Below, one piece after another: positions 25,301 to 64,000 of a stretch of DNA of 64,000 nt. Made by a program: the position numbers and the translations under genes. The DNA is from Perna viridis. Taxonomy: Eukaryota. Numbering within the stretch: the stretch's first letter is position 1; every line of letters starts with the position of its first letter. Where the stretch lies: assembly GCA_037379345.1 (NCBI GenBank), contig CM074511.1, positions 25,775,171-25,839,170 on the forward strand, written 5' to 3'. The notes beneath the pieces are model-generated. The model did not search any database, had not been told where the DNA came from, and saw only the letters and a program-made list of their open reading frames with translations.

Positions 25301-28300
25301 AGGTCTACATGTACATGTATGAGTAGCACTCTCACAACCACCTAGAAAAAGAACAAAGGTACTTAAAAAAGACTACCCATCGTAGTTCTATAATCTGGGT
25401 ATAGGCTACAGAATAATACATTAATTAAATTTGACCACTTGAAAAAAAAAAAAAAAACCTTCGTCACTAACTGTAGACTTTCCTAATTTTGCTTTGATCA
25501 TTTACCTATTAAGTACAGCCCTACCTTAAAACTAGGCAGAAGCATGTAATTAGTGATTCAGGCATTTCTTAATATGATGAATAACCCCCATGCCTGGTTT
25601 TTAGACAGAACCATACTTAAAATGTTATTGAAATTGTAATAATCAACAATTTTTTGCATGATTTAGAACTCTAACAAATAGGCTTCTGGAACAGGGTTAT
25701 GTTGCTACAAGATTGAAATCATCACTACATAAGTTTTATGGTCGTCATCATGAACTTGTGGATCGTTATAGTGTATCCATCTGCACCATGAAAACTGATT
25801 TATTCAATGGATCATAGTTTTCCTTTCCTCGTTTGTCTACCCTGGACTTTTTATGAGCAACTCGGTGGGTGTTTCTAGAAAAGCAGAGGACGCTTACCCT
25901 ACCAGTGCACCTGGTCCATGCTCCCATGAAGTCCGAGTTGCTCATTTACTTTTGTTACTTTGTATGTATGATTTTAGTTACTTTATGTTCTTTGTTGTAT
26001 ATGTCTGTTTTCCATGTCTGGTCTTTGTCCCTGAATTACATTCTTTTGAATACCACTATAACCTTGGTTTCCTTGATTACTCTCTTACTCATTAAATCTT
26101 AGAACTATCATTAAATTCCAATATTATTGAGGAATAACAGTTTATTTATTTTTTTAATATTCTCAATGCTCATATTGCACTTGAAAATAATCCTGTACCA
26201 CTTGATATAGGTGATCTCCTCATTGACAAAAAAGTAATTACAGTCATTCATAAATAAAATAGATTTCCATATCAATAAAATTGATGGTGACCTTTTGTCC
26301 TAATTTTTTTTCAGGATGTATTTTTCGGTCTTATTTTTATTTAGTACTAAACATTATTATTGAAATCATATTATACCTCTGTCAGAACAGTCTAGATTGA
26401 AGAGACCTGGACAACCTGGTATATCACATAGATCTCCCTTCCATCCTGTTACATAGTCGCATTTACATTTTCCACTTTCAATTTTACCATGCTCAGAACA
26501 TTCAGAGTTACAGCCAAGTCCAGCAAAACCTGGATCACATTCACAGAGTCCAGAGTTGATAGGTGTCTCTGTTCCATTAACACAAGGGTCGTTACAGGCA
26601 GGTCCCATCCAATTACCTGTACAGTTTTGACAAAGTGGTGGGTCAAAGTTCCATTCATCACAAACCCCTAAAGTAAAGAAATATATCTATCGATTATTGT
26701 ATAAATTTAAATATGAAAAAACGAAGTAAAAATGTGTAGCCAAAATTTCTGGTATGAGGGCCAATAAGAACGAGCGAATGATTTAATGTTACAGATTTTT
26801 AGATTTTCACACAAACATTTCAACTATTAGCAAGTAGATTTTTTTGTTTTTAACCCTTTTAATGCCACATTTTTTCCACCGGTTAGCGATGTATTCGTTT
26901 TGAATTCTTCATATATATTTTATCCATTGCAAACAATACTAATGCTACAAACCTCTATCATGACAGTTTGGTTCACCAGGACAGTCAGCAACATGGCATG
27001 CCACACCCATCCAACCAGCAAAGCACTCGCACGTCATTTCTTCACTGTTACAATCACCATGGCCACTACACTCAATGTCGGTTGTAGGGTGACGAGGACA
27101 TCCTGGCACTTCACAGTAAGTACCACTCCATCCCACCAAAGGATCACAGAAACACTTGTAGGCACTGTCACAAACACCATTTCCTGAACATTGAATGTTA
27201 CATCCATCTCCATGGTAACAAGTCGTATTACATACACATTGTGTATTGTTTGCATTTGGGGCTCCATGAATACATGGGTCATTACATGCTGGTCCATACC
27301 AGCCAACATCACAGTTCATGCATTTTGGTGGAGAATATGCTGGATCGCAGTAACCTTGGTCATGACAGTTGGGTTCTCCTGGACAATCTGGGTCACCACA
27401 TCCAGTCAGTTCATCTTAAATAACAATAATCAACTTTTTAGTGATGTTTGAAGACTTTCAAACATGTTCAAAATGAAATAAACAAAATTAGAGATTTCAT
27501 TTTCTTTCAAGTTTTTAATGCCAATTACATTATATTTTTTGTACAATTGCTTACTTTGTCTTTTCAACAATCCTTTTTCAATCAAGTATCATTTTGTAGA
27601 CATAAATCATGCTTTAAAATCTCTTCTTTAATTATTCTTTACCTGCATCATGTATCAATTCATTTTCCCATTGGTAGCAACAACCACAAAAAATCCCTTG
27701 GGTAAAATAACAATATCTTTTGATATAATTTGATATGCTTTCTAACTTTAGGATTTACCTGCCCATCCAGGTTCACAGTAACATTTCCCACTACCAGCCA
27801 TACAGATACCATGGCCTGAACACTCATCAGATGTTTTAGATGGGCATCCAGGACGGGTACATTTATCTTCCTGCCAATTATCTGTACAGGTGCATGTCCC
27901 AAGGGAGTTACAATTACCATGATCATTACATTCGGATTCACAGAACCTTCCAAGATGGCAGTCATCACATTGACATTCACCTCCTACACATTGACCTTGA
28001 CCATTGCATGTCTTTGAACAGTCATCTCCATGGTAACAGGGGTCACAAATACAGGTGCCTATAGATGTACAAGTCCCATGTCCGGAACAGGTTGTGTTGG
28101 CATGACATTGGCTGTCACATCTATGACCGACATAGTTACTATCACACTGACATGTGCCCCAGTGAGAACATGTGCCATGGCCAGAACAGGTTGTAGTTGG
28201 ATCACAATAATATTGACAATCACTGCCAACAAAACCAGAATTACATGTGCATGATCCTGATAAGAAAGTTCCACGACCATTGCAAAGGTTGGCACTAGCT

Positions 28301-31300
28301 TCACATAATGTACCGCTACTTCCATCTGTTGCTGGACTTATTCCATTTCCTCCAGATACAGACCGTTGGAATTTCAGAACCTTATGTGTATAGTTACCAG
28401 TGAAAGTCCTAATCCTACCCCCACCACCACCAGCGCTGTAATGACTACCACAACAGCCACCTAAATAACAAGAACATGCACATTCTGTTCCAGCACCATC
28501 ACCTCCATCTGCATTTAAAATTCCCCATCCTTCAATAATTTCACTGTCCATCCACACAGAACCACCACTTCCTGCTCCTCCTGCTCCAGACCCTATACCT
28601 TTCATGTGAACCTGACCTTCCAAAAACATAGCATTTGAAGATACAACTCTGAGTGCTGAACCTCCTGAGCCTGCATTACCATGACTACAACTACCTCCAC
28701 CACTCCCAGCAGTCCATGGAAGACATTTGTCATCATAAGTTGAGGAACTTCCAGTACAATAAGAGCCACTGCTGCATGAATTGTATCCATTTCCACCATG
28801 GCCTCCATGAGCAGCTCCACCCCCTGCATCATTACTGCATGTATTACCTGCACCTGGTCCAGTTGCCTTTTCATACCCTTTTCCATCTCCAGTTATTATT
28901 CCAGCTTTTTCAACATCCATAATCCAGCTAACCAGAGACCCTGAATATGTAACCTCCACTGTACTGCTGTGCTGAACATGGAAATATTGAGTAAAAACAT
29001 CAAGTCCTTCACTGGTAGTGTAATCATCATCAATCAGCTGAATTTTTCCTTGATTCAGCACTGTCATGGTAGACAGATGGTATTTGCCGGGCAAAGGTGT
29101 GCCGATGTTGCCCATTGCAGAACCAGAATAATATAAGGCTGTTGTTCCTCTTGTGTACAAATGCTCCAGACCATACACATCTCCTTTAATGGTCATCACT
29201 TGTTCAACATAGCTAGTAGGTGGGAAAATGACCTTTGACCCTTCTACTGTGTAAATGTTAGATCCTAGCCCATCACGAAGGCGATTATCGGCAATGTATA
29301 ATGTGATACCATTACTAATGTAGAGCAGACCATTGGCTTCATGAATGTGGTCATAGTATATTGGAGTCTGTAAATACAAAAACTAAACATCATCAAGTTA
29401 TGAAATGGAAAATATGTTGTAAAACTAGCACGTAATTAAATGATATTAATACGTCATGGCTAGCTGAACTAGAAAAAATGAAAAAAGCCCACTTTTATAT
29501 ACCCCCTCAACACCCCAGTTACATTATGGTAAAAATATATTAAAACAAAGCTGTGAAATGTTGATTCAATCTGAAATTAAATTCAACAATATGGCATATT
29601 TAAGTTTCTGTCAAAATATCAAGTGACTGTGATCACTACTTATAGAAAAAATTGTAAAGAAAAAGTTGTGGAGGGACAAAAGATAATTAGACAATTAGAT
29701 GGACAGATAACAGTAATCACTAGATACATTTTGTCTAACCTACCACAAAACTAAACGTTACCTATCAAGAATAACTTGTTTTTGTTTTTACCTGTGTTGG
29801 AGCTGCACATGCCCTGTTGTTCAGGTGTATATTGTCAAGGTATACATTGTCTATATTTGTTCTGAATGAACATGTGTTGATGCTGCCTCTGTTCAGGTTG
29901 TCTATCCATAGCTCTCGCCATTCATCATCTCCTACGGTTGATTGAACATATACAGTGCCAGGACCACCAGGGTATGAGCCTCCCCCACCCGTCGCTATGA
30001 CGTTTCCATTGAATAACATGTATTCTGATAGGTAGATTGATATTCTGCCTCCTGATCCTGCACCGTTCGCTGAAAAGTCAAATATCGTACATTTCAGCAT
30101 AATATAGTTGAAACTTAAAATGAGGGTCTGCCACAAGTAATGATAACTTAGATGACCTTCTCCCCCAAAACTTATTTATGATGTTATGCTAAGGATAACT
30201 TCACTCAATATATTCAATAAAATCTTTTTGTAGTGAAATAATGGGATGGTTAAAAAATTAATCAAAGTTGAATTCTATTGATTTTTTTTTAATACAGATC
30301 ACTATATAACTAACCATCTAATTCTACTCTCCAGTTTTCAAACCTCTTTTATTTACATATTGGTTCTATAATCCTGAAAGGGGCATACTTTATATTTACA
30401 ATATTTGGATATTTGATAAAAAGTTTATTCTAAGGTGAACTTGTTTATAACTAGCAATAACAAAGACATTAGTATTTACAGTACTTCATTTAGTTAATAA
30501 AATATCATAACATCAAATAATTTTTTTTTTTTTGGAAACAGTGAATATATTGACAAAAAAAGTAAAAACATTTGATCTCCTCCTTACATGAATGGCTTAT
30601 GCCTCCATTAGCTGATGCTGTTCCATAACCTTTAAGATTTCCCAAGGTCATCATAATACTACCACCACTACCAGAACCACCATGGTAGGATGTCCCACTC
30701 AATCCTGTAGTTTTTATTGTACCATCAAGGCGTAATTCCTGTAATGTACAAATATATATCTTACAAAATACTATTTGGTCTCAGTCTTGTATTCTTTGCC
30801 CCATAGGCTTCTATAGTATACCTTAAATTTTCATGATTTTTAAAAAAATAGAGAAGGAGTTTCAATCTAACTCTTGACTATTTTTTCCAATTAAGGAAAT
30901 GTCAAAAATAATTTTTAGGTCCATTTTAGAAAAAAAAGGGACAAACTTTGGTACACCAGGACAGGTCAAACTAAAAATAGACTTTTTTCTACTTTCACTT
31001 TTATTTTGAGTTCATAAAGTAGACCCCTTTTCTGAAGCATTATTTTTCATGAAAATACTGTTTCTTCTCAAAAACATTTTTTTTGTGTCATAGATTGATA
31101 TTTACCCTGTACTTGTGATGACAAATGATAGTCATTTGGCAAGAAACAAAAACAGGAAAAGGCAAAAAAGAGGCACGCTATATTTTTTAGCTGCATGTTT
31201 TGACGTACACCCGCTCAGGAATATGTAATACAAGACTGATACCATTTAAGTTAGTAGACCTAGGGTAAGGGACACAACTCTTACAAATCATTGGAACGTT

Positions 31301-34300
31301 TGTATTTACCATTTTATACCAATCTAATGTAAGCATCAAAGTAGCCCGGACTGGTTTCATTCTGCTTCAAAAGGGAAACTTGAAAGGCTTTGATGAAATT
31401 GTATATGATACAAACATTATAACTGATTTGAAGAGTTATGTCCCTTATGCCAGGTATACCTTCTTAATTATCAAAATAACAAGGGTTAAGGAGGTAGACC
31501 TAGGGTAAGGGAAACAACTCATAAAAATCACTGGAACGTTTGTATTCAGCATTTTACATCAATCTTATGTAAGCATCTAATTAACTTGGATTCATTTTAT
31601 TCTGCTTCAAATGAAAGCTTGAGAGGCTTAGGTGAAATTGTGTATGATGCAAACATATCACTGATTTCATGAGTTATGTCCCTTATCCTAGGTCTACCTC
31701 CTTAAAATAAAATTAAAATTAGAACACGTTAGTAAAAATGAATATAATATGGTCATTTCAAAACCAGATAAATGTTGGTGTTATCTTATCATTTACAAGG
31801 TAGGTAATAATTTTTAGCATAGTTCTCAGTAATATACTGAATAAAAGCATTTGTTTCTACATCTTGCTTCAGTGATTTTTTTTTAATCTTAATTGATAAT
31901 TCATCAAAAAACAGCTTGGAGAAATGCAATGGCCAAACCATAAACCATAATCACCTCTGCAACGTTGATTGTAACATGACTGCCACCAGAGCCACCATAC
32001 GATCCCCCACCTCCACTGCCTGGTTCTGTAGCCGACATAACACTGCCGTACTGACTTCCTGCTGTAGCACTGTCATGCCCATGGCCCCCTGTATGGTCAA
32101 CAAAAACTGACAGTAGGTCAAGTGTTTCCCAAATATGCATGTTACAATTCAACTAAAACGTTATGCTGGTCATTTCCATGTGGACAACTTTTTTCCATTA
32201 TGCTATGTGTAACTTCACCAATTTTTGTTGTCCTGTTGCATTATATTCTATGTTTTGTCCCTTTGTTTGACTCATATTAATTCTGATATTTCTAGCCACA
32301 ATAGTTCTAAGTCATCTCATTAAGTAGGGTATAATTGAATTTATTTAGATCAGTCATGTGATCAGTTGCAGTATATATTTTTTTGCATGGCTTTGCAGTA
32401 TCTGTAGATTTTAAATCTGTCTTAGTGAAACATATTATATAGTAAGCTTCCTTAGAATGATTTTTTTTCTACAGAAATGTATTGAATTAATATTTCATTT
32501 TTATATCAAAAGAAATAAATACAAATTGATTTCATTTACCTTATCCAAAATACAATCCCCAATTTATGCAGTAAGTTAACATGGGAGAGCAACTAAAATT
32601 GCTAAAAAGCTATGCCTCATCTATATGAAGCCACACACCAAATTTAAAATCAATCAATTTGGAACCAAGATTTTTGTGATGAAAAATTTCTCTATCATTC
32701 CATACAGTGAAAAATGGCTAAGACCCAGGAAACAGGATGTTGATATTGGTGAGCAACATATGCCCCATCTATATGAAGCCACACTCCAAATGTGAAACCA
32801 ATCCATCCATTGGGATCCGAGATAATTGAGATGAAAATTTTACGGGACAGACAGAATGAAGGACAGACGAGGTAATTCCAATATACCACCTACTTGTTAA
32901 ATAGGGTTATAACATGCCTTAAACAGACATTATATGTAGTCCCATCATACAATAAAAAATATATTGTGAACCTTTGTAAACCAAATACCTGTCTTGACTA
33001 AACAAATCCATCAGTTCAAAAGGGTTGGTTTCGACAAGTTTTTATTGGATCAAAATAATTAGAACATACCTGCACTGCCATGTCCTGCTCCTGAAGCCCA
33101 GTCTGTTGAGTCACTACCTGTTCCTTGACCTTGACCTTTAGGATATCCATGTCCATCTCCTTGTACAGTTCCACCGTATTCAACAGTCATCCTAGTTGAA
33201 TTCAACTTGACCTTTAAACTGTTAGTTTCCACAGTGCCACCATTTTTCACAGTAAATTTTCCTCCTGTTATGGTAGGGAAGAGAGGATCCATGGTAACCG
33301 TGATTAGACCTTTGTTATTAACAGTAATAGTTCCTATGGTTACAACCCCTGGAGTATAAGGATGTACTGATTTGTCTGTATACCACATGACCAATGATCT
33401 CAATTCACCTGTGTGAGCATGCTCAGAGAGAATAAGTTCTGCATTTCTCTCTATATAGATATTTTCTACTCCAACAAGTCTACCACTAAGAATGAACTTT
33501 TCAGTGGTAAGAATAAATTCAGTTGGTAATACAAGTTCTCCACCCACATCAACATGGAGACCACATGGAGCATCAAGGTAGGTGTGGGTTGATTCAACAA
33601 AGTTAACAATGACTTGTTGTCTGGACTGCACTCTGACCATTCCCTTTTTGTTCCCAGTAAGCTCATGAATCAAAACTGTCACATTATCTACACCATGTGG
33701 ATGGTAGAAATGAATATATGAGTAGCCCTCTACTTGAACTTCATTGAATTCATAATAAATACTATTGTTTTCCATCACCATGGCTGGATTTATGGTGTTC
33801 AATGCTCCATTGTCCACAAGTAGTTTAGAATGTTCTGGTTCAATCATTGTCCTGTTGAGTCTGGGGTTGTATTTCAGTTCTCTGTACTGTGGTCCTCTCT
33901 GTGACTCATACTTGTAGATAGTACCTGGACCTCCAACTGATGACCCTGTACCACCATGTGATAGATACCTGCCTCCATACAAATTGAAAAATCCAACGTG
34001 TAATGCAATACGGCCTCCACTACCTCCACCTCCTGAGCCAAAACCTTTCCCACCATTTACATTGATAGTTCCATGACCAGAAATGTTGTATGCTGTGATG
34101 AATATGCTCCCTCCACTACCGCCACCAGCAGAAGAGCTGGTAGCACTTGAACCCCCTGAACTGATCTCACCATCAATGTGGATATTTCTACCAACCATCA
34201 TTTTGAGGAAACCTCCACCTGATCCACTGTTAGATCCAGCTCCTCCACTGCCAAGGTCCATAGGTGAAAACACAGATCCATATGGGTGAGAGTCATCAGA

Positions 34301-55300: not shown

Positions 55301-58300
55301 AAAGGTTAACAGGTATGCTGTTACTAAAAAATATTGCCTTACTTACCTGTTAATGACCCACTACCAGAAACAGACAATACAGCATCATCCTCAATAATAA
55401 CATCAGTGGCTTCAAGGTTTATAGTCTTAGTGGCTGATCTAATATCTAATGTTGATTTGACCTTCATGTGGAACAAAGTCAAGGTCAAACTTAAAGGGTC
55501 ATCATACACTACTAATGTGGAATTATATCCAAGTGTAAGTGATTGAGCATTACTGTATATAGCTCCTGGTTTCAAATCTAATGTTGAATATTCATGTAGA
55601 GTCAGAGAGTTGACTTGTAGGTTTCCAGTATTTTGGACTGTCACAGTTCCATGGTCCCAGATTCTGAATGTATTCGCTATTAAAGACCCTGCAAGATTTA
55701 GAGTTGGATTATTTCCTGTGAAGTCAAAATCAGTGTTAACCTGAAGTGTTGATCCAGCTTTAATGTCAAAGTTACACTGACAACCATGATTAAGGTCATC
55801 AAATGAGGATATTGACAGTTTAGAATTGTCAGACAATGTGACAGTTCCTGATCCATCTGACATCAGTTTACTGACAGCTAGGTCTGTTGTAAGTGACAAA
55901 GAAGTTCCATTGGTCAGCTGGACTTCATTCAGTGAGCTTGGAAGTGAAAGTCCATCCATCAAGTCTATAGTACCAGCCTGGTTCAGCAACAGTGTGGTAT
56001 ATGCTGACCCAGAAACTGTCTTAGAAACATACACAGTGCCTGAAAATTGAATTGCAAATATTAACGACTATGCATTTAGAGTTTATAACCTTCAACTCCA
56101 TAATTAAACTTGCTTAAACTGTCAAGTTACCCCCACAAGAATTTCAATAGATGAACTTCAAACTATTTAAAACTTGTTTCAAAATGCTTGTGATAAGCAC
56201 AGTTAATTTGGAGTAAACTTAGATTAACAAACAATCTAAAGTATTTCTTAAGAACTTACAGGCTTAAGTGAGTTTTAAACATAGTTCAGTTGTATAAAGA
56301 AAACATTCAATCACATGATTTCAGTTTTTCAAAAATGTTCATTCATGCTGTCAAAGAATGAAAATTTATTCTCAAAATAAGAAAATAAAACAAACTTATG
56401 GATCAATTATTCATCATTCCAGAGTTGATAATATTAACTAACCAGGTGATGCACCATTGCCAGATGCTGACATTAATCCACCATAGCGGTAAGCCTCTGA
56501 CACAGTCACAGATATCCTTCCACCTCCACCTCCCCCTGACCCACCATTGGCTGACAATGTACCAGTACCGGTCATATCCTTAGTGGTAACTAGTATGCTC
56601 CCACCGCTGCCACCAGAGGTTGATGAATCAAATCCACTCACGTCAATATCACCATTCAATGTGAACTTATTGATAACTACAAGTTCAATTTGGCCTCCAC
56701 CAGTTCCTAAAAATGATGATGCACCATAACCATTACTTCCATAAGCCTTTGGAGAGACAATATTTCCATAAATTTTTCCTACTGGATTAGCAATATTCTT
56801 GCCTGCACCACCATGACTCGCACCAGATGAACTAACACTAGGCTCGCCTGGACCTCCAGAAACATAACCTTTACCCTTTCCATCTATGACCCCACCATAC
56901 TTAATTTCGAGGTTGGTGACTGTGATTTTGGTGAAATTTTTACCTTCTGGGTCTCCTGTTAGGATAAGCTTACCACCAGCTTCTATGACAATGCTGTTAT
57001 ATGAGTAGGCCTTGGCAGCCAGTTCACATTGTGTATCTCTGTAGATGAGGAGATCTGTTGTGCTATCACAAGTTGCATTCAACAGTGGACTAATCTCACT
57101 GGTGTGTAAAGCAACCACATCAATTGGATTAGAATTGATAGTGTAGCCAGCTGACACATTTAAATGTTCTAACTGTAAAGTTGTAGACTGATCAGACCTC
57201 ATGCATTTGGATGTGTGTTCAAACTTCCCATTGTAATCTATCACTAATGATTTCCACACCAGTCGACTATGGGTGTTAGTACCAGCATAATAGCTGTTTG
57301 TCTGGGCTGGATTTCCTATTTGTACGATACCAGAATCTCTAACAAATACATTGTTTGTCTTCAACATCAACGTACCACAAATCTCCAGAATGTGACCTCT
57401 TTCAACAATGACATTTTCAGGTAGCTCTAATTTACCATAATTACTAATGTGAATGGATGATTTAATTGAAAGCTCTGATACGGCTGATGGATATTTGGTT
57501 GAAACGTAGACTTCATTAAATTTGTCTACGGTGAAGTTTGACTGTGTTGTACCAGTTATGTCCCCTACTGTAACACTGAGAGCAGCGCCAATATCTGGTC
57601 TGGTAGTAAAGGCAACATTATCGTCAGTCTGGATGTCAATTTGGTCAATTTCAACAGAAAATTCTGTAGATGGTACAGGAATTCTACTAACAGCATCAGT
57701 TGGTACGTCATTGTTGTTAATTATAACCTATTAATGGATAAATGCTGTTTTATATTTTTGGTCATAAAACATTTGGCAACTTTTCATGTTTAAAAATCCA
57801 TTTAAGTATTACATGTACAAAAATAAATTGCTGTTTTAAAAGTTTGTCTTTTGAAATATTTGTGTGGTAGCTTAATATTTTCATAATACAGACATTTCTA
57901 AATATTTGTTTGCATATAACAAAGTAAAACATTTAAAAAAAAAAAATGTCTTCATAAAGCTACTGTCAACCATGATAATCCTGAAGTTCACAAAAACTCA
58001 TTTTCAAGGAAATTTAATCAAAAACCTCTCAATCTCATTTATTAGTGGTAGATTTCTTTTTTGTCACAAATAACAATTAACAAAATGTTGAAATCATTGT
58101 AACCTTTTATTTTTGCCAAAATTGAAATTTTAAAATACATTAATTCAAACTTGCATTTTGGTCTTTAATTGTAAAATTGTAATGATAAATGCATTTAAAT
58201 ATATTGATTTCTAAAATTTCTGTAAACTTTATACATGTATATCACTGAAGACTAACCTTTCTATCTGGTGAAAGGGAGTTAATATCCTTGGCAAGGTAGA

Positions 58301-61300
58301 TAACTCCAGCTGCACCATGTTGCCCATTGCCATTGCCATGACCTCCATAGGCCATGAGGTTACCTTTAATGTTGCCATTGGTGTATTCAAGGGAGATAAT
58401 TCCACCACCCCCGCCTCCACCATCAATACCATTACCGCCATTAACACTTATTTTCCCTATAATTATATAATACTAATGATGAAATAATTTAATTGTCATG
58501 TGAAAATATTAAATATATAATGAGCAACTAAAGCCTGAGAAATACCAAGCTCTATGAAGTTCCCAAAATACTGTCTCTTTTTCCAACTATTTCTTGATTT
58601 TTTTTTTCTGAACCCCTCCATTTTGAAAGTGTAATTTGACTAGTGCAATTTGAAACAAGGAAATAGGAGATTTTCCATATGTTGGTATAACTGAGTTATG
58701 ATTTCATTGAAATACACTAAAATGAACATTTCATAGGGCAGATAACTCTGTCAAATATCTCATTTTTCTATAAACATTCTGATGAAATATTTCTGAGCAA
58801 ATCCAGTGATACAGAGATTAAACAATGGTCTTTTCAAATAAACAAAGCATCTTTGAGTGAAATTATATTGTAAGATAGGTGGTGTTTTGACAGGCATGTT
58901 TCAGAATTTCCATTTTGCCTGATTCTTACAAAAACTTACACATAAACCGACCAATATGATACCCCTTCTTTCAAGATTTTTTACCTGTAACATCAATACT
59001 TGTTGCTGCTGAGATCCATACTCCACCACCAGAACCTCCTCCACTGGCTGATGTAGCACTCTCACCACTGAAAAAAAAACAGTATTGTTAAAAGAGACAT
59101 GACACAAAATTTTTTTTTTCAATTCTTGGTTTATTGGATTTATTACACCAAATATATATCATAAAAACGTCCCTTGTAGTCACATACGTCATATAAATAA
59201 TTAATTAAAGATAAATTGATTCAAAATCGACGATGAACCAAGCCATACAAATTTTAATTAGCCATGTGGTCACATGACCATGCTACATCATTGGTTCTCA
59301 ATTCATAGATCGAGTAGTTGAAATGCGTGGGGCTCCTGCACTTTTTACATGATTTCAACAACTGAGAGGGAAAATATTGAAAGTTTATATACTTACAGTT
59401 GTATCAATTTAAACCACTTCGAGAAGAAAATGATAAACAATGACAGAAATATTTAACTACTTCATGTATGAAGACTATGTGAATTGTTTTATTTCAAAAT
59501 TTGTAAGACAAAAGAAATGCAATTATTTTTCAATTATCCAAGTTATACACCTGTGTTGACACCTGTGTCACGAGGTGCCAAACCATGTTAAGATAAAAGA
59601 AGCCGCCTACACTTTCTCTTTGCCATAATTAAGCCTACCGGGCTTGCTAATTGTTATAACCTAGCATCAAAGAAAGAACGATACACAGAGTGTCATTATT
59701 TTAGTTGTACCCTCCTGTTCAAGTCCTAAAATAGTGTGCAAAGTAGTTGCATTTTCGCCAGGCGGGAATGTATGCCTAAAAAAATGAAAAGCTGAAGGAA
59801 AACAAGAAGAACTTTAGCCTTCTTACTTTTTACACATGAATATTACAATCATACACAGATCATTAGACCACTCTGCATCATATATGCAAGCTATTTTCAA
59901 AGATTTATTAATTTTTTCGGGCATGTGTATATATTTTCGATGCACCCAAATGGAGATTGAGAACCAATGACATAGCACTTCCATGTATGGTAAGTGAGTG
60001 TTATTAACTTCCGGATTTCATTTATGCATATTAATTAGATCGTCATGATAACACAAATAAATCATTCTAACTTTACTTAGCCCTAACCTGATGAAAAAAC
60101 GTTTGTTACACTCCTATCTAAACATACTCTAGTTTTTATAAATATAAATGTTTAAAAAATGATATTTTTGCATCACGTCTCCTTTAAGAGACACAAATAT
60201 CACATTTTCTGTCCTTTTCAGCCATGAAAAATTTTCTCCAATCTTGATTATCTGAAACTCTCCACATACTATGAGTAAAAAGTGAGATACTGCATTACAA
60301 AAAAATTCCACATTGAATCAATCAAGTCATATTCTACAATTCTACATTTTCCTAAAGTCCACTAATTCAAAGAGAAACAATGTCCAACTTCATAAAACTT
60401 AATTTGAAGTTATCCCTAAGTCTTTCTTCCACTCAATTTTCAACCAATCAGCGTGCTTATTTATTGAAATTAGAGAAAAAAACTCAAGGATTTGAGGACT
60501 ATATCAATTTAAGTTTCTTTCATGATACCTGAACATTGAAAGGAATGATGAAGTCAGAAACCTAACACTAAATATATATCCTACTTACTCTGCTGTTATG
60601 TCCCCTTTATGAACAACATTGGCAGCTTGGATATGGAGTAATCCTCCTCCTTTAGTGTTATCTCCACCAGATCCCATGTACATAGGTTTCTGGTAGGAAT
60701 CGTAAGCAGCTCCACCAGAGTAATCACTTATACCCCCTCCTTCACCAGCATGGCTAGCTCCAGCATGGTTCGTACCTGCTCCTTTAATTTAGATTTTTAA
60801 AATTACAACATGAAGATGCACATATTATAGTGCTAGGTATACCCAACTTGTACAGCCATCCCACAAAACAGGAAGTCGATACATGTATTGGAAAGACCAA
60901 ATTTGCTCACAACTTATGCACCATCTATATCAAATTTGAAATAATGTATGCCCAATAGTGCAACAATTTTTCTGAATCAATAATGGCTGGCTCAGAAAAT
61001 GATTTAAAAGTTCCCTAAGAAATCAACCAAATTTTGCACCAATTGAAAGAGTTATCTCCCTTTTCACTTTTTATGAGCAACTCGGCGGGTGTTTTCTAGA
61101 AAAGCAAAGAAGCTTACCCTACCGGTGCACCTGGTCCATGCTTCCAGTTTTTAGTGGAGTCCGAGTTGCTCATTTACTTTTGTTACTTTGTATGTATGAT
61201 TTTAGTTACTTTATGTTCTTTGTTGTGAATGTCTGTTTTCCATGTCTGGTCTTTGTCCCTGGATTACATTCTTTTGATTACCGCTATAACCTTGGTTCCC

Positions 61301-63520
61301 TTGATTACTCTTTCAATGAATTTCAATGCTTTCTATGTTATTTATTTCTCTTTAACCATTGCAGTTAATCAAAAATCAACATTCAACTTTGAGAAAGGAT
61401 GCATTTGGGATATGAAATAAATGAGACAAAATTTTTTGCCTAGTTTTTGCATGGACGCCTTCTTAATTCTTATACATTATGCAGTACTAAGCACATACAA
61501 TTTATTCATGAAGAATTCAAAATAAGTGTGCAGATGAAATAAATTAGAAATTAATTTTAATCCTTAAGTAATATTTTTCTTACCATCTCCACCATTGATG
61601 TCAGATCTAGCATTAAGATTCACTATGCCACCTTCTTCAGATTCAAACTTGGATGAAACTTCCATTGATAGTTTTGCTGCTGAAATTTCACAAGATGCTC
61701 CTAAAAATAGCTCAGACAATGCAAAGTTATACTGGACATCATCAAACAGTATCAATTTACTTCCTTGTTGTAGTTTCAAACTGGAAAGCTGGAATGCAGC
61801 TGCTGTTCCATGTGATTTGCCAGTCTCTTTAATGTCTGTTGTTGTTCTTATCATAGTTAGATACTGTAGGCCACCTAGTTTACCATGGACCAAGTTGTTG
61901 GTGCCATACCATTTCACCTCTGACGGGAGAGTCAAGGTTCCGTCAGTGTAGACCTTAGCATGAGCTGGGAAATACAGTGATACTTGCCGAATGGTTATTA
62001 TTTGATGAATACCAACATGAATGGTTCCAATCTTATCAATGTTGGTAACAAAGTCACTGTCCCCAGAGAAACTCTGAACTGTCAGAGTATGGATTTCAGA
62101 AGTGCTGGTACTAGGTTCCAATGCTAAATGTGCTCCATTTCGCAAGTGAAGCTCACTGACTTCCAGAGTGTTTGAGGAGTCTAAGGGTACCCATGTTCTA
62201 CTGCTATCACTTCTGGAGATTGTGTCAGAATCCATATTGTCAATCAATTCCTACAATTTTTTTTAATTTACCTATTACCTAATAGTGACTTTTTCTCAAA
62301 AATGTACAAGTGATACTGTGTTTGCAAGCAAAACACAAAAGTCGCCAAAACTGGCAAATGGTCAGGTTTAGTCAAAATCTGATGCTGCCACTGAATTTAA
62401 AATGTAATGTTTATCTTATAAATCAGTTTTCATTGAAATCCAACTATGTTGATATTTTGCCAATTTTGGTGGCCATTTAAAAAAAAAATAGCAGCTTTCT
62501 GACAAAATGTGAAAGTGCCATTGAATTTAGAATGTCATGTTTACTCTAGATATCAATTTTCATTGAAATCAAACGATGTTGAAATTTTGCCAATTTTGGC
62601 AGCCTTTCTAAAAAAACTTTTTTATGCCTTTGATGTCAGCAAGCTAAGATATTTTCATATAATTAATGAGTTCCACTAATTTTATAGAATTTTTTTGTCA
62701 TTTTTCTGGGTTTTGTTTTCGTGGCCATTTTGAAATTCCGTAAGTTGTTTGCACATCCCCTGAGCATGCTTGATTTTTGAGCCAAGTTTGGTATGCATCC
62801 AATAAACAGTATCTGAGTATTTGTCTGGACATCTCTACATTCAGAAGAAGAGAAAAGCAAAAACAAATAAGTCGCAAAACTTCGTTTTGGCAACTTAATA
62901 ATAGACTAATTTCAAAATCAGGAATTTTTTATGTCATTTTCTAGTATTGAGTTACTATAACACACAAATCTTTCATTTCCTGGAGACCAAAACAATGTCT
63001 TTTTCTCTGACACTGATATGGTTATGGATTTAAAACATATCTGTACTTCAAATGGACAAAATTAGACTAACAAATATCTGGTAAGAAATGAAAAATAAAG
63101 TCCTCCCACCCGCCCCATATTTTTTGTAAAGGATGAATGAGAATCTACCATTTAGGTTTACTTAGCCTAACATAACAACTCTTATACTTCAGTCTAGCTG
63201 TGAAATTGTAGCTCTTGATTTTTTTTTTTTTATTTTGTGATCTAACGTTTCAAAAATACCAAAAAAAATAGTTAGAGCTACTTTTCGCAGCTAACTTCAG
63301 TCATGTGTATTCCATTAAGAGATACTCACAGCAACAGAATGGACCTCATTGTTGTTTACAATGAGTTTAGTTTTGGACCCTGTATCAACATAGATGGTTC
63401 CTGCTCCACCATAACCAGCTGATGACGGACCACCATGAGCTTGGAATTGACCTGTGAACTCTGATGATGTGTAGTACACAGATAGACGACCACCAGCTCC
63501 ACCTCCTGAACTACTGCTGC
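1..63520 (-). CDS. Giant multi-exon gene, partial at both ends: extracellular protein >11,800 aa with 17 Gly-rich modules, an EGF-like array and >=6 EGF-VWD-LamG-C8-like units
   Basis: 42 exons with canonical AG/GT boundaries; intron phases and exon lengths are consistent at every junction; coding total 35,531 nt; conserved motifs read straight across junctions (e.g. ASP-G|GTVYV, WNR|YLG). All long ORFs in the track belong to this frame. Confidence 0.9.
2135..2381 (-). CDS. Exon 41: contains KRRKR, start of a C8-like domain
   Basis: ORF 2116-2397; acceptor ttgtag, donor GTATCT; phase 1 to 2. Confidence 0.85.
2801..3196. mobile_element. TTAA-flanked MITE with imperfect TIR
   Basis: TTAA|GTAGC-N8-TAAGAATCATGCAAAAT at both ends in inverted orientation. 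Confidence 0.65.
3216..3313 (-). CDS. Exon 40 (YLGLMEIKNHW...LSSLWTFNEE)
   Basis: Acceptor gtttag, donor GTATTT; phase 2 to 1; matches the LamG C-terminal motif of the other units. Confidence 0.85.
3578..4680 (-). CDS. Exon 39: basic VWD, Thr-rich linker, LamG/pentraxin-like domain
   Basis: ORF 3574-4707; acceptor ttgaag, donor GTGAGC; phase 0 to 2; FEGCIDELRIWN. Confidence 0.9.
4860..5127 (+). repeat. Dispersed repeat, second copy at about 58670-58946
   Basis: Shared CAGATAACTCTGTC..AATGGTCTTTTC..CCATTTTGCCT.ATTCTTACAAA. Confidence 0.65.
5362..13062 (-). CDS. Exon 38: 7.7-kb exon with four EGF-VWD-LamG-C8-like units and the start of a fifth
   Basis: ORF 5326-13143; acceptor tttcag, donor GTAGGT; phase 0 to 0; VWD starts GHFITFDG, GHYTLFDG, SHLRTFNE, GHITTIDG; LamG-like motifs FIGTFDDFRIW, YTGDIDEVRVW. 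Confidence 0.95.
13942..14059 (-). CDS. Exon 37 (SESGTAIVRWVVSS...KCPSVPIV)
   Basis: Acceptor ttgtag, donor GTATGT; phase 2 to 0, exactly bridging exons 36 and 38. Confidence 0.8.
14312..14683 (+). mobile_element. Dispersed element with a ~180-bp fold-back at its left end
   Basis: Homologous to 22631-23408; arms AATAAGATAATTAATTGG / CCAATTGATTATCCTATT. Confidence 0.7.
14901..15186 (-). CDS. Exon 36: start of an unassigned domain (PVFRCYTEESDGNYTAWFGYNN)
   Basis: ORF 14897-15196; acceptor ttgtag, donor GTAAGT; phase 1 to 2. Confidence 0.85.
15550..15663 (-). CDS. Exon 35: EGF/laminin-EGF-like
   Basis: Acceptor ttacag, donor GTAAGT; phase 1 to 1; CQCHDDDINGHWTGSACDEC. Confidence 0.87.
15887..16210 (-). 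CDS. Exon 34: EGF-like
   Basis: Acceptor ttgcag, donor GTATGA; phase 1 to 1. Confidence 0.87.
16548..16796 (-). CDS. Exon 33: EGF-like
   Basis: Acceptor tttcag, donor GTAGGA; phase 1 to 1. Confidence 0.87.
17168..17333. repeat. Fold-back repeat with ~54-bp arms and a central ATGAACAGCCGAAGGCAGTTCAT hairpin
   Basis: Arms 17168-17221 and 17279-17333 are near-perfect reverse complements. Confidence 0.8.
17978..18154 (-). CDS. Exon 32: EGF-like
   Basis: Acceptor tttcag, donor GTAAAA; phase 1 to 1. Confidence 0.87.
18656..20398 (-). CDS. Exon 31: long EGF-like array
   Basis: ORF 18606-20417; acceptor ttccag, donor GTAAGT; phase 1 to 1. Confidence 0.93.
21552..21722 (-). CDS. Exon 30: EGF-like
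   Basis: Acceptor ttacag, donor GTGAGT; phase 1 to 1. Confidence 0.87.
22167..22335 (-). CDS. Exon 29: EGF-like
   Basis: Acceptor tgatag, donor GTGAGT; phase 0 to 1; GWYSEDCSKPCVHG. Confidence 0.85.
22355..22539. repeat. ~93-bp tandem duplication next to the exon 29 acceptor
   Basis: AAATGCAATTCTTGAGAACA...AGAGGTTCCAAGTCAACCA..ATGATGC occurs twice. Confidence 0.85.
22631..23408. mobile_element. Same family: forward copy interrupted by an inverted copy (about 22966-23365)
   Basis: The forward copy breaks after GTGAATTATTGAAATT and resumes at TTACACTAGGAAC...CTATCTATATA; the intervening DNA is the reverse complement of a whole element. Confidence 0.7.
23682..23788 (-). CDS. Exon 28: EGF-like
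   Basis: Acceptor ttgcag, donor GTAAGT; phase 1 to 0; GWTGDACDIPDCPGGC. Confidence 0.87.
23949..24610 (-). CDS. Exon 27: EGF-like repeats
   Basis: Acceptor ttaaag, donor GTAAGA; phase 2 to 1. Confidence 0.88.
25200..25341 (-). CDS. Exon 26: EGF-like repeats
   Basis: Acceptor ttctag, donor GTAATA; phase 1 to 2; GCESATHTCTCRPGWTGIGC. Confidence 0.87.
25671..26083 (+). mobile_element. 5'-truncated retroelement 3' end, longest copy (probably Penelope-like)
   Basis: 25671-25817 encodes LTNRLLEQGYVATRLKSSLHKFYGRHHELVDRYSVSICTMKTDLFNGS*, which resembles the C-terminal tail of mollusc RT ORFs (recalled); the 3' part is shared with three other copies. Confidence 0.7.
26377..26667 (-). CDS. Exon 25: EGF-like repeats
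   Basis: Acceptor ctttag, donor GTATAA; phase 1 to 1. Confidence 0.87.
26953..27414 (-). CDS. Exon 24: EGF-like repeats
   Basis: Acceptor tttaag, donor GTTTGT; phase 1 to 1. Confidence 0.87.
27759..29367 (-). CDS. Exon 23: last (Cys-decorated) Gly-rich module fused to the first EGF-like repeats
   Basis: ORF 27748-29379; acceptor ttacag, donor GTAAAT; phase 0 to 1. Confidence 0.93.
29792..30069 (-). CDS. Exon 22 (GAGSGGRISI...GPGTVYVQ)
   Basis: Acceptor tttcag, donor GTAAAA; phase 1 to 0. Confidence 0.87.
30588..30738 (-). CDS. Exon 21 (ELRLDGTIKTTG...GSGGSIMM)
   Basis: Acceptor ttacag, donor GTAAGG; phase 0 to 1. Confidence 0.85.
31250..31463. mobile_element. Second, more diverged tandem copy of the TTAA MITE
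   Basis: TTAA-flanked, same internal sequence. Confidence 0.8.
31490..31701. mobile_element. MITE with TTAA TSD and GG..CC ends (Kolobok-like)
   Basis: TTAA|GGAGGTAGACCTAGGGTAAGGG ... CCCTTATCCTAGGTCTACCTCC|TTAA. Confidence 0.85.
31955..32088 (-). CDS. Exon 20 (GGHGHDSATAGSQYGS...)
   Basis: Acceptor catacag, donor GTGATT; phase 1 to 0. Confidence 0.8.
33070..39294 (-). CDS. Exon 19: 6.2-kb exon with five Gly-rich modules
   Basis: ORF 33059-39352; acceptor tatacag, donor GTATGT; phase 1 to 1. Confidence 0.95.
39653..39949 (-). CDS. Exon 18
   Basis: ORF 39645-39959; acceptor ttttag, donor GTATGT; phase 1 to 1. Confidence 0.85.
40250..40607 (-). CDS. Exon 17
   Basis: ORF 40236-40619; acceptor caacag, donor GTACAA; phase 0 to 1. 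Confidence 0.83.
41200..41561 (-). CDS. Exon 16 (GSFRGHG...GAGGRIAV...GPGTVFVE)
   Basis: Acceptor ttttaag, donor GTAGAG; phase 1 to 0. Confidence 0.85.
42094..42327 (-). CDS. Exon 15 (YGSLYKPNETGS...GGGSGGSIWI)
   Basis: Acceptor tcacag, donor GTATTG; phase 1 to 1. Confidence 0.85.
42505..42826 (+). mobile_element. Retroelement 3' fragment, copy 2
   Basis: High identity to 25775-26083; same 3' end CCCTTGATTACTCT. Confidence 0.75.
43153..43324 (-). CDS. Exon 14 (DIKYSALFKAD...GAGHATIGGG)
   Basis: Acceptor ttttag, donor GTAAGT; phase 0 to 1. Confidence 0.85.
44315..48327 (-). CDS. Exon 13: 4.0-kb exon with three Gly-rich modules
   Basis: ORF 44297-48244 extended to acceptor ctttcttttcag; donor GTAAGT; phase 1 to 0. 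Confidence 0.93.
48685..48914 (-). CDS. Exon 12 (YAFSGTITAYGG...GPGTIYIQ)
   Basis: Acceptor ttttag, donor GTATCC; phase 2 to 1. Confidence 0.82.
49368..49524. mobile_element. Fold-back MITE (PIF/Harbinger-like ends)
   Basis: GGGGCCGGTTTCATAAAACATCTCAAACTGAGATTTTCC ... GGAAAATCTCAATTTGAGATTGTTTTATGAATCCGG. Confidence 0.6.
49643..49826 (-). CDS. Exon 11 (GAIKVDG...GGGSGGTIF...GGGSGGRMKL)
   Basis: Acceptor ttatag, donor GTATTT; phase 1 to 2. Confidence 0.85.
50426..50558 (-). mobile_element. Degenerate inverted copy 4 of the same retroelement tail
   Basis: Reverse complement matches TTTCCATGTCTGGTCTTTGTCC..GGATTAC.TTCTTTTGATT. Confidence 0.6.
50677..50881 (-). CDS. Exon 10 (ISSHDLATGAGYASLGG...GGAGGGYLKI)
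   Basis: Acceptor ttacag, donor GTAAAG; phase 0 to 1. Confidence 0.85.
51178..51353. mobile_element. TA-type MITE; related copy at about 1905-2062
   Basis: CCGTAAACATA...TATGTTTACAG|TA; shared core ATTAGCGTT.TATAGTGTTAAA. Confidence 0.6.
51553..51893 (-). CDS. Exon 9
   Basis: ORF 51532-51927; acceptor ttacag, donor GTAAGT; phase 1 to 0. Confidence 0.88.
52271..52483. mobile_element. Third copy of the TTAA MITE
   Basis: TTAA|GGAGGTAGACCTAAAGTAAGGG ... CCCTTACCCTAGGTCTACCTTC. Confidence 0.8.
52746..52903. repeat. 79-bp tandem duplication covering the exon 8 donor site
   Basis: Two copies of AGCA.AACAAATTG.TCTGACAC.AAAATAATTTAGTTTCAATATCATAAAGAGATAAA.CCTCACCTTTGAACTCAT. Confidence 0.9.
52892..54841 (-). 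CDS. Exon 8: two Gly-rich blocks
   Basis: ORF 52821-54881; acceptor ttttag, donor GTGAGG; phase 1 to 1. Confidence 0.9.
55072..55317. mobile_element. MITE with perfect 14-bp TIR and 7-bp TSD (P-superfamily-like)
   Basis: CTGTTAC|CATACCTGTTAACC ... GGTTAACAGGTATG|CTGTTAC. Confidence 0.85.
55347..56039 (-). CDS. Exon 7: spacer region
   Basis: ORF 55339-56034; acceptor tttcag, donor GTAAGT; phase 1 to 1. Confidence 0.9.
56443..57727 (-). CDS. Exon 6: one Gly-rich module
   Basis: Extends ORF 56438-57370 upstream to acceptor taatag; donor GTTAGT; phase 0 to 1. Confidence 0.9.
58257..58456 (-). CDS. Exon 5 (GKISVNGG...GAAGVIYL)
   Basis: Acceptor ttatag, donor GTTAGT; phase 1 to 0. Confidence 0.85.
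58985..59067 (-). CDS. Exon 4 (DGESATSASGGGSGGGVWISA)
   Basis: Acceptor ttttcag, donor GTAA; phase 2 to 1. Confidence 0.85.
60589..60781 (-). CDS. Exon 3 (GAGTNHAGASHAG...YDSYQKPMYMGSGG)
   Basis: Acceptor ttaaag, donor GTAAGT; phase 1 to 2. Confidence 0.85.
61066..61311 (+). mobile_element. Retroelement 3' fragment, copy 3
   Basis: Same 3' end, shorter 5' extent. Confidence 0.75.
61584..62250 (-). CDS. Exon 2: beta-rich spacer of a Gly-rich module
   Basis: ORF 61564-62247; acceptor ttgtag, donor GTAAGA; phase 0 to 1. Confidence 0.9.
62330..62899 (+). mobile_element. Helentron/HINE-like non-autonomous element
   Basis: Internal ~130-bp tandem repeats (62422, 62552), terminal palindrome GTCGCAAAACTTCGTTTTGGCAAC followed by TTAAT, and a matching AAGTCGCCAAAAC near the left end. 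Confidence 0.5.
63330..63520 (-). CDS. Exon 1 of window: end of Gly-rich module 1 (SSSGGGAGGRLSVYY...GAGTIYVD)
   Basis: Acceptor ttctag, donor GTGAGT; phase 1 to 0; absent from the ORF track. Confidence 0.85.
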
Positions 63521-63683
63521 CTAGAATTACAGATCAATTAGATTCAATTTAAAAGATTGAATTTTTTTAATTCCATCAAAAATTTACTTTAAATAAAAAT
63601 ACTATTTATCAGTGGCCAGTAAATTATTGTAGTAATTGGATTATTATTGTGCAGATATTGTATTATTTTCAGGTATTCAATTA

Positions 63684-63887
63684 CTGTGAAAGTATTATTG
63701 TTCATGGGGTACCAATTTTGTGGTTGTCGTGGGTGGGCTAAACCACTAATTTGGTTCCGAACGAAAAGGAGAATCCCTCTGATGTGTATACTGAAAACCT
63801 CAAAACCACAAATTCAAGAATTCAATAACTATTATTTCTTCCCTAAACCATGAAAATTGGTATCCACGAATTAAAGTACTTTCCCAG
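63684..63887. mobile_element. TA-flanked MITE (Tc1/mariner-pogo-like)
   Basis: TA|CTGTGAAAGTA..GGTACCAATTTT ... AAAATTGGTATCC..TACTTTCCCAG|TA. Confidence 0.7.
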
Positions 63888-64000
63888 TAATAAAATTCAA
63901 ATTACCATAATTTTTCGCAGTTACTTCACATTTTTTAAAACAAAAATTCAATTTGATCCATCCAAAGCAAAATGAACAAATAAAAAAAAAATCCCCAGAA

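Follow-up and report, generated by a model that had tools for sequence, protein, structure and literature searches.

What kind of protein is encoded when a glycine-rich module of about 400 residues recurs, in fixed internal order and on one strand, over tens of kilobases of an animal genome? The question is raised by 64,000 nucleotides from Perna viridis (assembly GCA_037379345.1, contig CM074511.1, positions 25,775,171 to 25,839,170; this whole stretch is called the window hereafter), where a short motif that closes each module is found 17 times. The answer that we favour, with a probability of roughly 0.65, is that the gene specifies a giant type I membrane protein in which solenoid modules, each carrying a conserved glycine-rich unit, would make up a long semi-rigid fibre for adhesion or for a coat. 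We describe the array and its transcript, follow its glycine-rich unit across the living world, and then weigh the predicted fold against its competitors.

The module array and its transcript

The window sequence contains 0 N, its GC (guanine–cytosine) skew is negative throughout, and every long open frame lies on the minus strand. The longest open reading frames (ORFs) of that strand are at 33059-39352 (2,097 codons), 44297-48244 (1,315), 52821-54881 (686) and 27748-29379 (543). An initial annotation, made from the letters of the window, had placed an anchor motif, G(A/P)xGT(I/V)Y, at 17 positions. In the relaxed form G..G(T/S)x(Y/F) all 17 are there, on the minus strand; the one at 56029 straddles an intron and stands at an exon start, while that at 28309 is degenerate. 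The spacing of some 385-435 residues that had been proposed also agrees with measurement, the seven modules that lie whole within long exons being 385-434 residues in length.

Each module comprises a beta-rich part of about 225 residues followed by a glycine-rich part of about 180, in which motifs follow one another in an invariant order: GxGAxHGGxGG, PYGS...P, GSGGG, GGxGGG-strand, GGGSGGS-strand, GGGGSGGR-strand and G..GT.Y. As had been noticed from the start, every copy keeps the same ordered glycine tracts and the same alternating-hydrophobic strands. The seven intact modules are 27-39% identical in pairs and share 33 invariant columns, nearly all of them glycine. They have 2-8 N-x-S/T sequons and 0-2 cysteines each, and their glycine content is about 17-19%. 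Protein searches were run exon by exon or ORF by ORF, not on a joined spliced model. A profile built from the seven intact modules, and run over stop-to-stop fragments in the three minus-strand frames, retrieved all the module pieces in the correct order, with E values between about 1e-3 (short exons) and 1e-171; chance is thereby excluded. The modules of the window are as follows, each anchor ending at about the first coordinate of its line.

63390..64000, minus strand: module 1, C-terminal end (anchor 1); profile positions 364-410 at 63390-63521; earlier exons at window-equivalent 64238-64883
58296..63389, minus strand: module 2; exons 61603-62241, 60597-60776, 59004-59069 and 58296-58457, with profile hits in order
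56029..58295, minus strand: module 3; exons 57206-57724 and 56456-56932; anchor GTVY at exon start, about 56029-56037
54420..56028, minus strand: module 4; exons 55354-55932 and 54420-54842, found by profile
53253..54419, minus strand: module 5, intact in one exon, 389 residues; profile E 3.9e-121
48827..53252, minus strand: module 6, in five exon pieces, 52881-53225, 51547-51900, 50675-50872, 49639-49827 and 48827-48946, found by profile
47306..48826, minus strand: module 7; profile positions 70-410 at 47306-48310
46151..47305, minus strand: module 8, intact, 385 residues; profile E 3e-131
44891..46150, minus strand: module 9, intact, about 420 residues; profile E 5e-136
41377..44890, minus strand: module 10; exons 44314-44890, 43153-43323, 42092-42327 and 41377-41559, from profile and transcript joints
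38897..41376, minus strand: module 11; exons 41198-41376, 40246-40605, 39652-39945 and 38897-39293, from profile and transcript joints
37664..38896, minus strand: module 12, intact, 411 residues; profile E 6e-163
36362..37663, minus strand: module 13, intact, 434 residues; profile E 5e-166
35111..36361, minus strand: module 14, intact, 417 residues, the one modelled; beta-rich half 35681-36361, glycine-rich half 35111-35680
33914..35110, minus strand: module 15, intact, 399 residues; profile E 2e-161
29948..33913, minus strand: module 16; exons 33068-33907, 31934-32089, 30601-30741 and 29948-30070, found by profile
28309..29947, minus strand: module 17, last and most divergent; profile positions 118-408 at 28309-29250; EGF_TEN/EGF_Teneurin in the same ORF (27748-29379)

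Seventeen module ends thus fall in the window, as annotated, but the array does not stop at its edge: it continues for about 78 kilobases (kb), and some 15 more modules are recognised by the profile in the adjoining 100 kb, for a total of approximately 30-32. The first module of the window is represented there by its C-terminal fragment alone. Module 17, at the other end, has features of its own. Over 28309-28938 (minus strand) its second glycine tract holds a cysteine-rich insert of some 15 residues, its third rung is shortened, and its degenerate anchor passes directly into the first teneurin-type EGF; it may be a capping or adapter module.

Is this array ever read as one message? In 14 sequencing runs from four studies, classed as RNA by a computed guess, 0.34-0.41 of the sampled words of window positions 39000-44900 are present, and exons make up about 37% of that interval. 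Transcript contigs of 3-4 kb (from four runs; the joints occur in runs from up to four studies) connect seven exons across six introns, skipping 39294-39651, 39946-40245, 40606-41197, 41560-42091, 42328-43152 and 43324-44313. All six introns read CT..AC on the plus strand, that is, GT..AG on the minus strand. The exons between the two long ones measure 171, 236, 362, 360 and 294 nucleotides, by coordinate arithmetic the frame is preserved across the six joints, and the spliced frames are those of the profile hits (f0, f0, f0, f1, f2, f2, f0). Contigs devoid of introns, together with a frame that is kept, show that a mature transcript joins modules 10 and 11 with the exons on either side; were these runs anything other than RNA, such contigs would be hard to explain.

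The distribution of introns is uneven. Five consecutive modules sit in a single exon of 6.3 kb (33059-39352), and the two modules just upstream are spread over seven exons (39294-44313); intron positions and phases in modules 10-11 (1, 1, 0, 2, 2, 2) ignore module boundaries. Two intronic stretches, 42349-42939 and 43334-43924, stand out in the RNA-type runs. Their summed contig depths range from thousands to over 100,000, where the flanking exons have about 10-17, and short joints and loose ends are numerous in them. They resemble transposon-like repeats, either highly expressed or very abundant, of which copies would sit in the introns.

Relatives of the glycine-rich unit

The initial annotation had considered such an array to be unusual in an animal protein. 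It is not peculiar to one animal: homologous arrays are common in bacteria and archaea, and they occur in a choanoflagellate and in many invertebrates. At E<=1e-3 the module profile matches 10,592 representative proteins (clusters at 50%), of which 2,491 remain at E<=1e-30. Many of these relatives match over the glycine-rich unit only, 5-12 times per protein, with periods of about 260, 300, 350 or 400-460 residues. Matches limited to the unit, at periods that are regular yet differ from protein to protein, imply that the glycine-rich unit is the conserved element and that the beta-rich spacer varies in length. When the units of the window are set against the eight repeats of one bacterial protein, identity is 35-41%, and 19 positions are invariant (18 glycines and one arginine).

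Among eukaryotes, the carriers comprise Saccoglossus, Branchiostoma, Ptychodera, Ciona, Diadema, Dreissena (55% identity), Solemya, the anemone Actinostola (46%) and the choanoflagellate Salpingoeca rosetta (38%). Bacterial carriers belong to the Verrucomicrobiota, Planctomycetota, Lentisphaerota, Desulfobacterota, Bdellovibrio, a Pseudomonas and many lineages of the candidate phyla radiation; archaeal carriers belong to DPANN lineages. The neighbours of the bacterial members are bacterial genes (QueG, HSP20, Obg, L27), and the proteins themselves end in dockerin, Ig or CarboxypepD_reg domains. Orthologues are collinear over four modules at 53-85% identity, compared with the 27-39% that separates neighbouring modules, which tells us that the array is old and that each module has been conserved individually. 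A pseudogene or a non-coding repeat was considered and ruled out by ORFs open for up to 2,097 codons, by the splicing seen in transcript contigs and by this conservation in other species.

Names are strikingly scarce in this company. Relatives are annotated as hypothetical or uncharacterised, save one that is named only for a carboxypeptidase-regulatory-like domain, and over the glycine-rich unit no relative has a match in Pfam, NCBIfam or the PDB. Literature searches for named homologues found nothing, and a search with the 190-residue glycine-rich half for proteins having a single unit brought up fragments only. On the side of Perna viridis, Pfam was run on the long exons, on seven whole modules and on 24 glycine-rich halves with no match to the modules even at E<=10, and hence with none to a characterised animal domain. 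No NCBIfam model matches the modules, and the named beta-helix families (PbH1/Beta_helix, Haemagg_act, Pertactin, G8) yield nothing above the Pfam cut-off. The protein atlas has no cluster at >=0.9; its leads are G8 and DUF8003 (PF26010), the second of which would suggest a link to plants. Judged by sequence similarity, then, the glycine-rich unit is a large repeat family of bacteria, archaea and holozoans that is unannotated in the libraries searched.

The G8 lead has an echo within the window. The beta-rich part of module 3 (ORF 56438-57370, minus strand) has a sub-threshold match to G8 (PF10162, E 4.9e-4, 20.4 bits for a cut-off of 22.9), and a bacterial G8 cluster is the named cluster of the atlas nearest to the module. 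There may be a distant link of the modules to G8/PbH1 beta-helix proteins such as fibrocystin and CEMIP/TMEM2.

Predicted fold and its alternatives

Module 14 was modelled with AlphaFold2 from 19 aligned modules, taken from this gene and from two related contigs. The model, with a predicted local distance difference test score (pLDDT) of 85.9 and a predicted template-modelling score (pTM) of 0.82, has strands throughout. A complete structural scan over 48,161 representative chains of the PDB gives 74 chains at Z>=8, nearly all of them right-handed beta-helices. The secretion domain of HMW1 leads (2odl, Z 17.6, 266 residues aligned), followed by EtpA (8cpk, Z 16.9; 8vba, Z 15.6), Fap2 (Z 12.9), the MpAFP beta-helix (Z 12.8) and PfbA (Z 12.8), and the alignments span residues 1-417 of the model. 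Foldseek against the PDB returned beta-helices exclusively, as weak matches, none at E<=0.001. The module is predicted to be a right-handed parallel beta-solenoid, similar over the whole domain to the beta-helix class of folds (pectate-lyase-like, two-partner secretion, autotransporter passenger), with some 12-13 rungs at 4.8 Å and a length of about 6 nm. The idea that the spacers between the glycine tracts are beta-solenoids holds at the level of prediction, the non-glycine half being modelled in this way. Foldseek against viral models gave marginal matches (E about 1e-3) to glycine-rich or collagen-like proteins of giant viruses, and these were not used as evidence.

The glycine-rich half was modelled separately from 24 rows, including the eight repeats of one bacterial protein. 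Here the pLDDT is 96.0 and the pTM 0.90, and the five models agree (pLDDT 94-96). Strands occupy residues 2-9, 85-96, 119-129 and 152-163, each being followed by a short strand. Between them are stretches of 15-68 residues, the (GGX)n tracts included, to which DSSP assigns no state although their pLDDT is above 95. Order in the tracts, which had been asserted at the outset, is supported by these scores and by the 19 columns that are invariant between animal and bacterial units. The structural matches of this half are of two sorts (rmsd, root-mean-square deviation):

7jjv, nine-helix polyproline-II bundle antifreeze protein: Z 7.6, rmsd 2.8, 101 of 126 residues aligned
EtpA: Z 6.8, rmsd 1.7, 104 residues aligned
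HMW1: Z 6.0, rmsd 1.9, 101 residues aligned
2pne, snow-flea antifreeze protein: Z 5.4, rmsd 2.7, 72 of 81 residues aligned
gp38 of phage PP01 (9v85): Z 4.4, rmsd 3.0, 105 residues aligned
gp38 of phage S16 (6f45): Z 4.3, rmsd 3.3, 105 residues aligned

How might such a half be built? When 695 units taken from the 150 best representative proteins are aligned, their tracts (GGxGGG, GGGSGGS, GGGGGGGR) have glycine at two positions in three with a period of three, and each tract leads into an alternating-hydrophobic strand and G-x-G turns. A rung of about 33 residues would have to come back over a strand of 12 residues, so that its 15-17 non-beta residues should be nearly fully extended. Rung length, the GGX period and the match to polyglycine-II (PGII) bundles together make it fairly probable that the tracts have polyglycine-II geometry, which is defined by phi of about -75 and psi of about +145 in tracts lying side by side. 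The model suggests a flattened three-sided solenoid, two sides being beta sheets and the third a stack of short, extended glycine tracts that form no ladder. The initial annotation had pictured separate PGII bundles alternating with the spacers. The half does superimpose on polyproline-II (PPII) and PGII bundles, but in the models the glycine part would consist of further rungs of the same solenoid, fitting the beta-helices of EtpA and HMW1 about as well as it fits PGII bundles; a separate bundle is not what they predict.

Several observations weigh against the fibre that we propose. The alignments behind the models are shallow (19 and 24 rows), and AlphaFold can be too confident when it gives a repeat protein a solenoid fold. 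The Z values of 7.6 and 6.8 reached by the glycine-rich half are in the middling range of the structural scan. The first 30 or so residues of each module are variable in length and have a pLDDT of 50-63, and with such poorly modelled junctions the modules may be jointed instead of collinear. Joining in a single transcript has been shown only for modules 10-11 and the flanking exons. Finally, the role is assigned by analogy. A complex prediction for end-to-end stacking, with the glycine-rich half of module 14 and the beta-rich half of module 15, scored 0.00 and counts neither way.

Shallow alignments and the leaning of AlphaFold towards solenoids would also be the starting point of a more radical objection, namely that the solenoid is an artefact of modelling a repetitive, glycine-rich sequence and that the real unit folds differently, perhaps into a compact bundle or as part of an oligomeric assembly. 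In the complex prediction, moreover, ESMFold2 gave the beta-rich half, as partner chain, a pLDDT below 50. What makes us think an artefact unlikely is the agreement of the five models, and the manner in which alternating hydrophobics, G-x-G turns and the invariant arginine fit a solenoid of three rungs, a pattern held in 695 units from very distant organisms.

Another possibility, which descends from the initial annotation, is that the glycine-rich halves are true relatives of the glycine-rich domain (GRD) of ALK/LTK or of the gp38 tip, i.e. self-contained, ligand-binding PGII honeycombs placed between solenoid spacers. The GGX period of the tracts would suit it, as would the presence of four PGII bundles (7jjv, 2pne, 9v85, 6f45) among the best structural matches of the half. 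The two gp38 values are below the level that the scan treats as meaningful, and no sequence match goes with them. PF12810 (ALK_LTK_GRD, cut-off 24.5 bits) is silent at E<=10 on the seven modules and the 24 glycine-rich halves. Over the whole genome it has a single match, outside this gene and on another contig, at C2:59335760-59335906 (minus strand), with 25.7 bits just over the cut-off, and this may be an exon of the animal's own ALK/LTK-type receptor. Sequence profiles of the PDB gave no real match at E<=10, merely a chance one to the Gly-Ser linker of a single-chain variable fragment (scFv), and no ALK/LTK chain is found in the top 50 of the 48,161, be it with the model of the whole module or with that of the glycine-rich half. 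The half, furthermore, has four long beta strands and fits the rungs of EtpA and HMW1 with an rmsd of 1.7-1.9. We deem such kinship distinctly improbable. The initial annotation was therefore half right: its ordered tracts and solenoid spacers stand, while kinship with ALK does not, kinship with gp38 is improbable, and the array is not unique to animals.

The 17-19% of glycine and the lack of a DSSP state might suggest that the tracts link folded beta domains and are themselves flexible, elastomeric or disordered, as happens in many structural proteins rich in glycine; this is hardly credible, though, given tracts of fixed length with pLDDT above 95 in which glycine, serine and arginine are invariant, position by position, from animals to bacteria.

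The whole gene, the proposed fibre and known systems

Downstream of the array the same gene continues, as strand and order indicate, with two further regions:

13200..28308, minus strand: teneurin-type EGF stalk; EGF_TEN E 1.9e-52 in ORF 18606-20417, and EGF-rich ORFs 23926-24213 and 26945-27319
1..13143, minus strand: EGF-VWD-LamG repeats and start of the last exon; VWD E 1.2e-37, Laminin_G_3

The last exon, of 3,101 codons, extends from window position 1419 to 7,883 bases below the window start. It encodes more LamG_3/EGF, one hydrophobic 21-mer (Kyte–Doolittle value 2.17) and then about 480 low-complexity residues, a tail in which Pfam finds no domain. A single hydrophobic segment followed by a tail, both after the LamG/EGF region, makes this, as far as sequence can tell, a membrane protein of type I whose distal end is the module array. 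A candidate signal-peptide exon, with a methionine, a leucine-rich hydrophobic run and a cleavage-like site of small residues, is seen at window-equivalent 150,762-151,238; the first detectable module lies about 8.5 kb downstream of it. If this start is real, the gene spans about 159 kb; we estimate the protein at roughly 20,000 residues.

The locus has another peculiarity. A mirror copy of the whole gene lies tail to tail with it (C1:25,571,379-25,684,385 on the plus strand, versus 25,803,641-25,917,716 on the minus strand, centre at about 25.744 Mb), and 20,018 nucleotides, introns included (window 28863-48833), align in one piece at 98.72% identity with 191 mismatches and 26 gap openings. 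Two explanations offer themselves: an inverted duplication that is very recent and exceeds 115 kb, or a haplotype that the assembly has folded in.

How would the whole work? The first 225 or so residues of each module would form ordinary three-sided beta-helix rungs. The last 180 or so would make two turns of nearly pure glycine and then three rungs of about 33 residues, each composed of a (GGX)2-type tract, a long alternating-hydrophobic strand, a G-x-G turn, a short strand and a further GGxG tract. Stacked upon one another, the tracts would give the solenoid one flat face, extended, non-beta and probably polyglycine-II-like. Some 31 modules in series would produce a semi-rigid, N-glycosylated extracellular fibre, 150-200 nm long if they are collinear, which the teneurin-type EGF stalk and the VWD/LamG region would hold away from the cell. 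By analogy, the fibre would most likely mediate adhesion or build a pericellular coat, because bacterial fibre adhesins share its predicted fold and because bacterial and archaeal relatives of the unit are common in episymbionts and predators, plausibly as surface proteins with such a role. The flat glycine face is a candidate surface for binding or for self-association. It is tempting to go further and to see in the unit a new and very large natural fold class, where a flat PGII face, free of side chains and laid on a parallel beta sheet, is the working surface, repeated about 31 times along the fibre either to bind something periodic (a glycan, a mineral, ice or a second fibre) or to let fibres associate laterally into sheets or bundles; we offer this as a tentative thought, and are more inclined to doubt it than to adopt it.

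Ordered glycine-rich polyproline-II assemblies are known from few families, namely springtail antifreeze proteins, Obg, acetophenone and acetone carboxylases, phage fibre tips and ALK/LTK, and they are under study as building blocks for protein design (bioRxiv 10.1101/2023.11.25.568672; PMC13243192). Reviews of PGII bundles also name predicted PE_PGRS and plant proteins. This set would become much larger with a confidently predicted unit that carries such tracts and occurs in giant surface proteins by the thousand, in organisms ranging from DPANN archaea to chordates. If the PGII face is real, more than 10,000 representative proteins would have it, far outnumbering the handful of PGII-bundle families known to date, and the unit would offer an easily expressed test object of 180 residues. 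The kind of protein is familiar, a beta-solenoid fibre; what may be new is a large repeat unit that has neither an entry in the libraries searched nor a description in the literature searched, possibly with a PGII face. Most known animal proteins are far smaller. This one is transcribed, spliced and conserved module by module between species, and it appears to be built on a fibre of bacterial type, an architecture that brings to mind how teneurins arose and suggests a cell-surface structure of a kind not yet studied.

Comparison with known systems helps to situate it. The fibre adhesins of two-partner secretion and autotransporter systems (HMW1, EtpA, FHA, Fap2, Ag43) are nearest in predicted fold: like them, the array would be a right-handed parallel beta-solenoid extended into a long extracellular fibre of many rungs, and the rungs of EtpA fit the glycine-rich rungs with an rmsd of 1.7. 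No sequence family is shared, however. Those adhesins are secreted bacterial passengers, whereas we deal here with about 31 discrete modules, each ending in the conserved glycine-rich unit, in what reads as a eukaryotic membrane protein of type I that also has EGF, VWD and LamG domains. The bacterial ice-binding adhesin MpIBP also has a very long extender of tens of tandem modules, by which its binding regions are held out from the cell, and the MpAFP beta-helix is among the matches (Z 12.8); in MpIBP, by contrast, Ig-like domains make up the extender and the beta-helix binds Ca2+, while the modules here lack the Ca-binding motif GGXGXD.

As regards the glycine-rich half, the springtail antifreeze proteins (7jjv, 2pne/3bog) give its best structural match and have its GGX periodicity. 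They consist of PGII helices only (6-9 of them), antiparallel, disulfide-bonded and in two layers, whereas here one layer would be a parallel beta sheet, the tracts have 6-7 residues, the unit would be repeated within a solenoid, and no relation in sequence is seen. The GRD of ALK/LTK and gp38 are likewise extracellular, glycine-rich, ordered and unlike collagen, gp38 being a weak structural match as well. The former is a honeycomb of about 14 polyglycine-II helices packed on a TNF-like beta sandwich, the latter a three-layer PGII sandwich, in contrast to the solenoid rungs with long parallel strands predicted here. ALK and LTK are, besides, receptor tyrosine kinases with a membrane-proximal EGF-like domain; the present protein has no kinase, and its glycine-rich part is repeated in tandem and does not belong to a TNF-like domain.

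A parallel in architecture is offered by teneurins, which also join, in a membrane protein, arrays of teneurin-type EGF to a large beta-rich ectodomain of bacterial type. A further likeness is that the family reaches the choanoflagellate Salpingoeca rosetta. Their membrane topology is opposite to the type I arrangement found here, and in place of a YD shell and toxin domain, the bacterial-type part of the Perna viridis protein is the array of glycine-rich modules, which we predict to be a solenoid.

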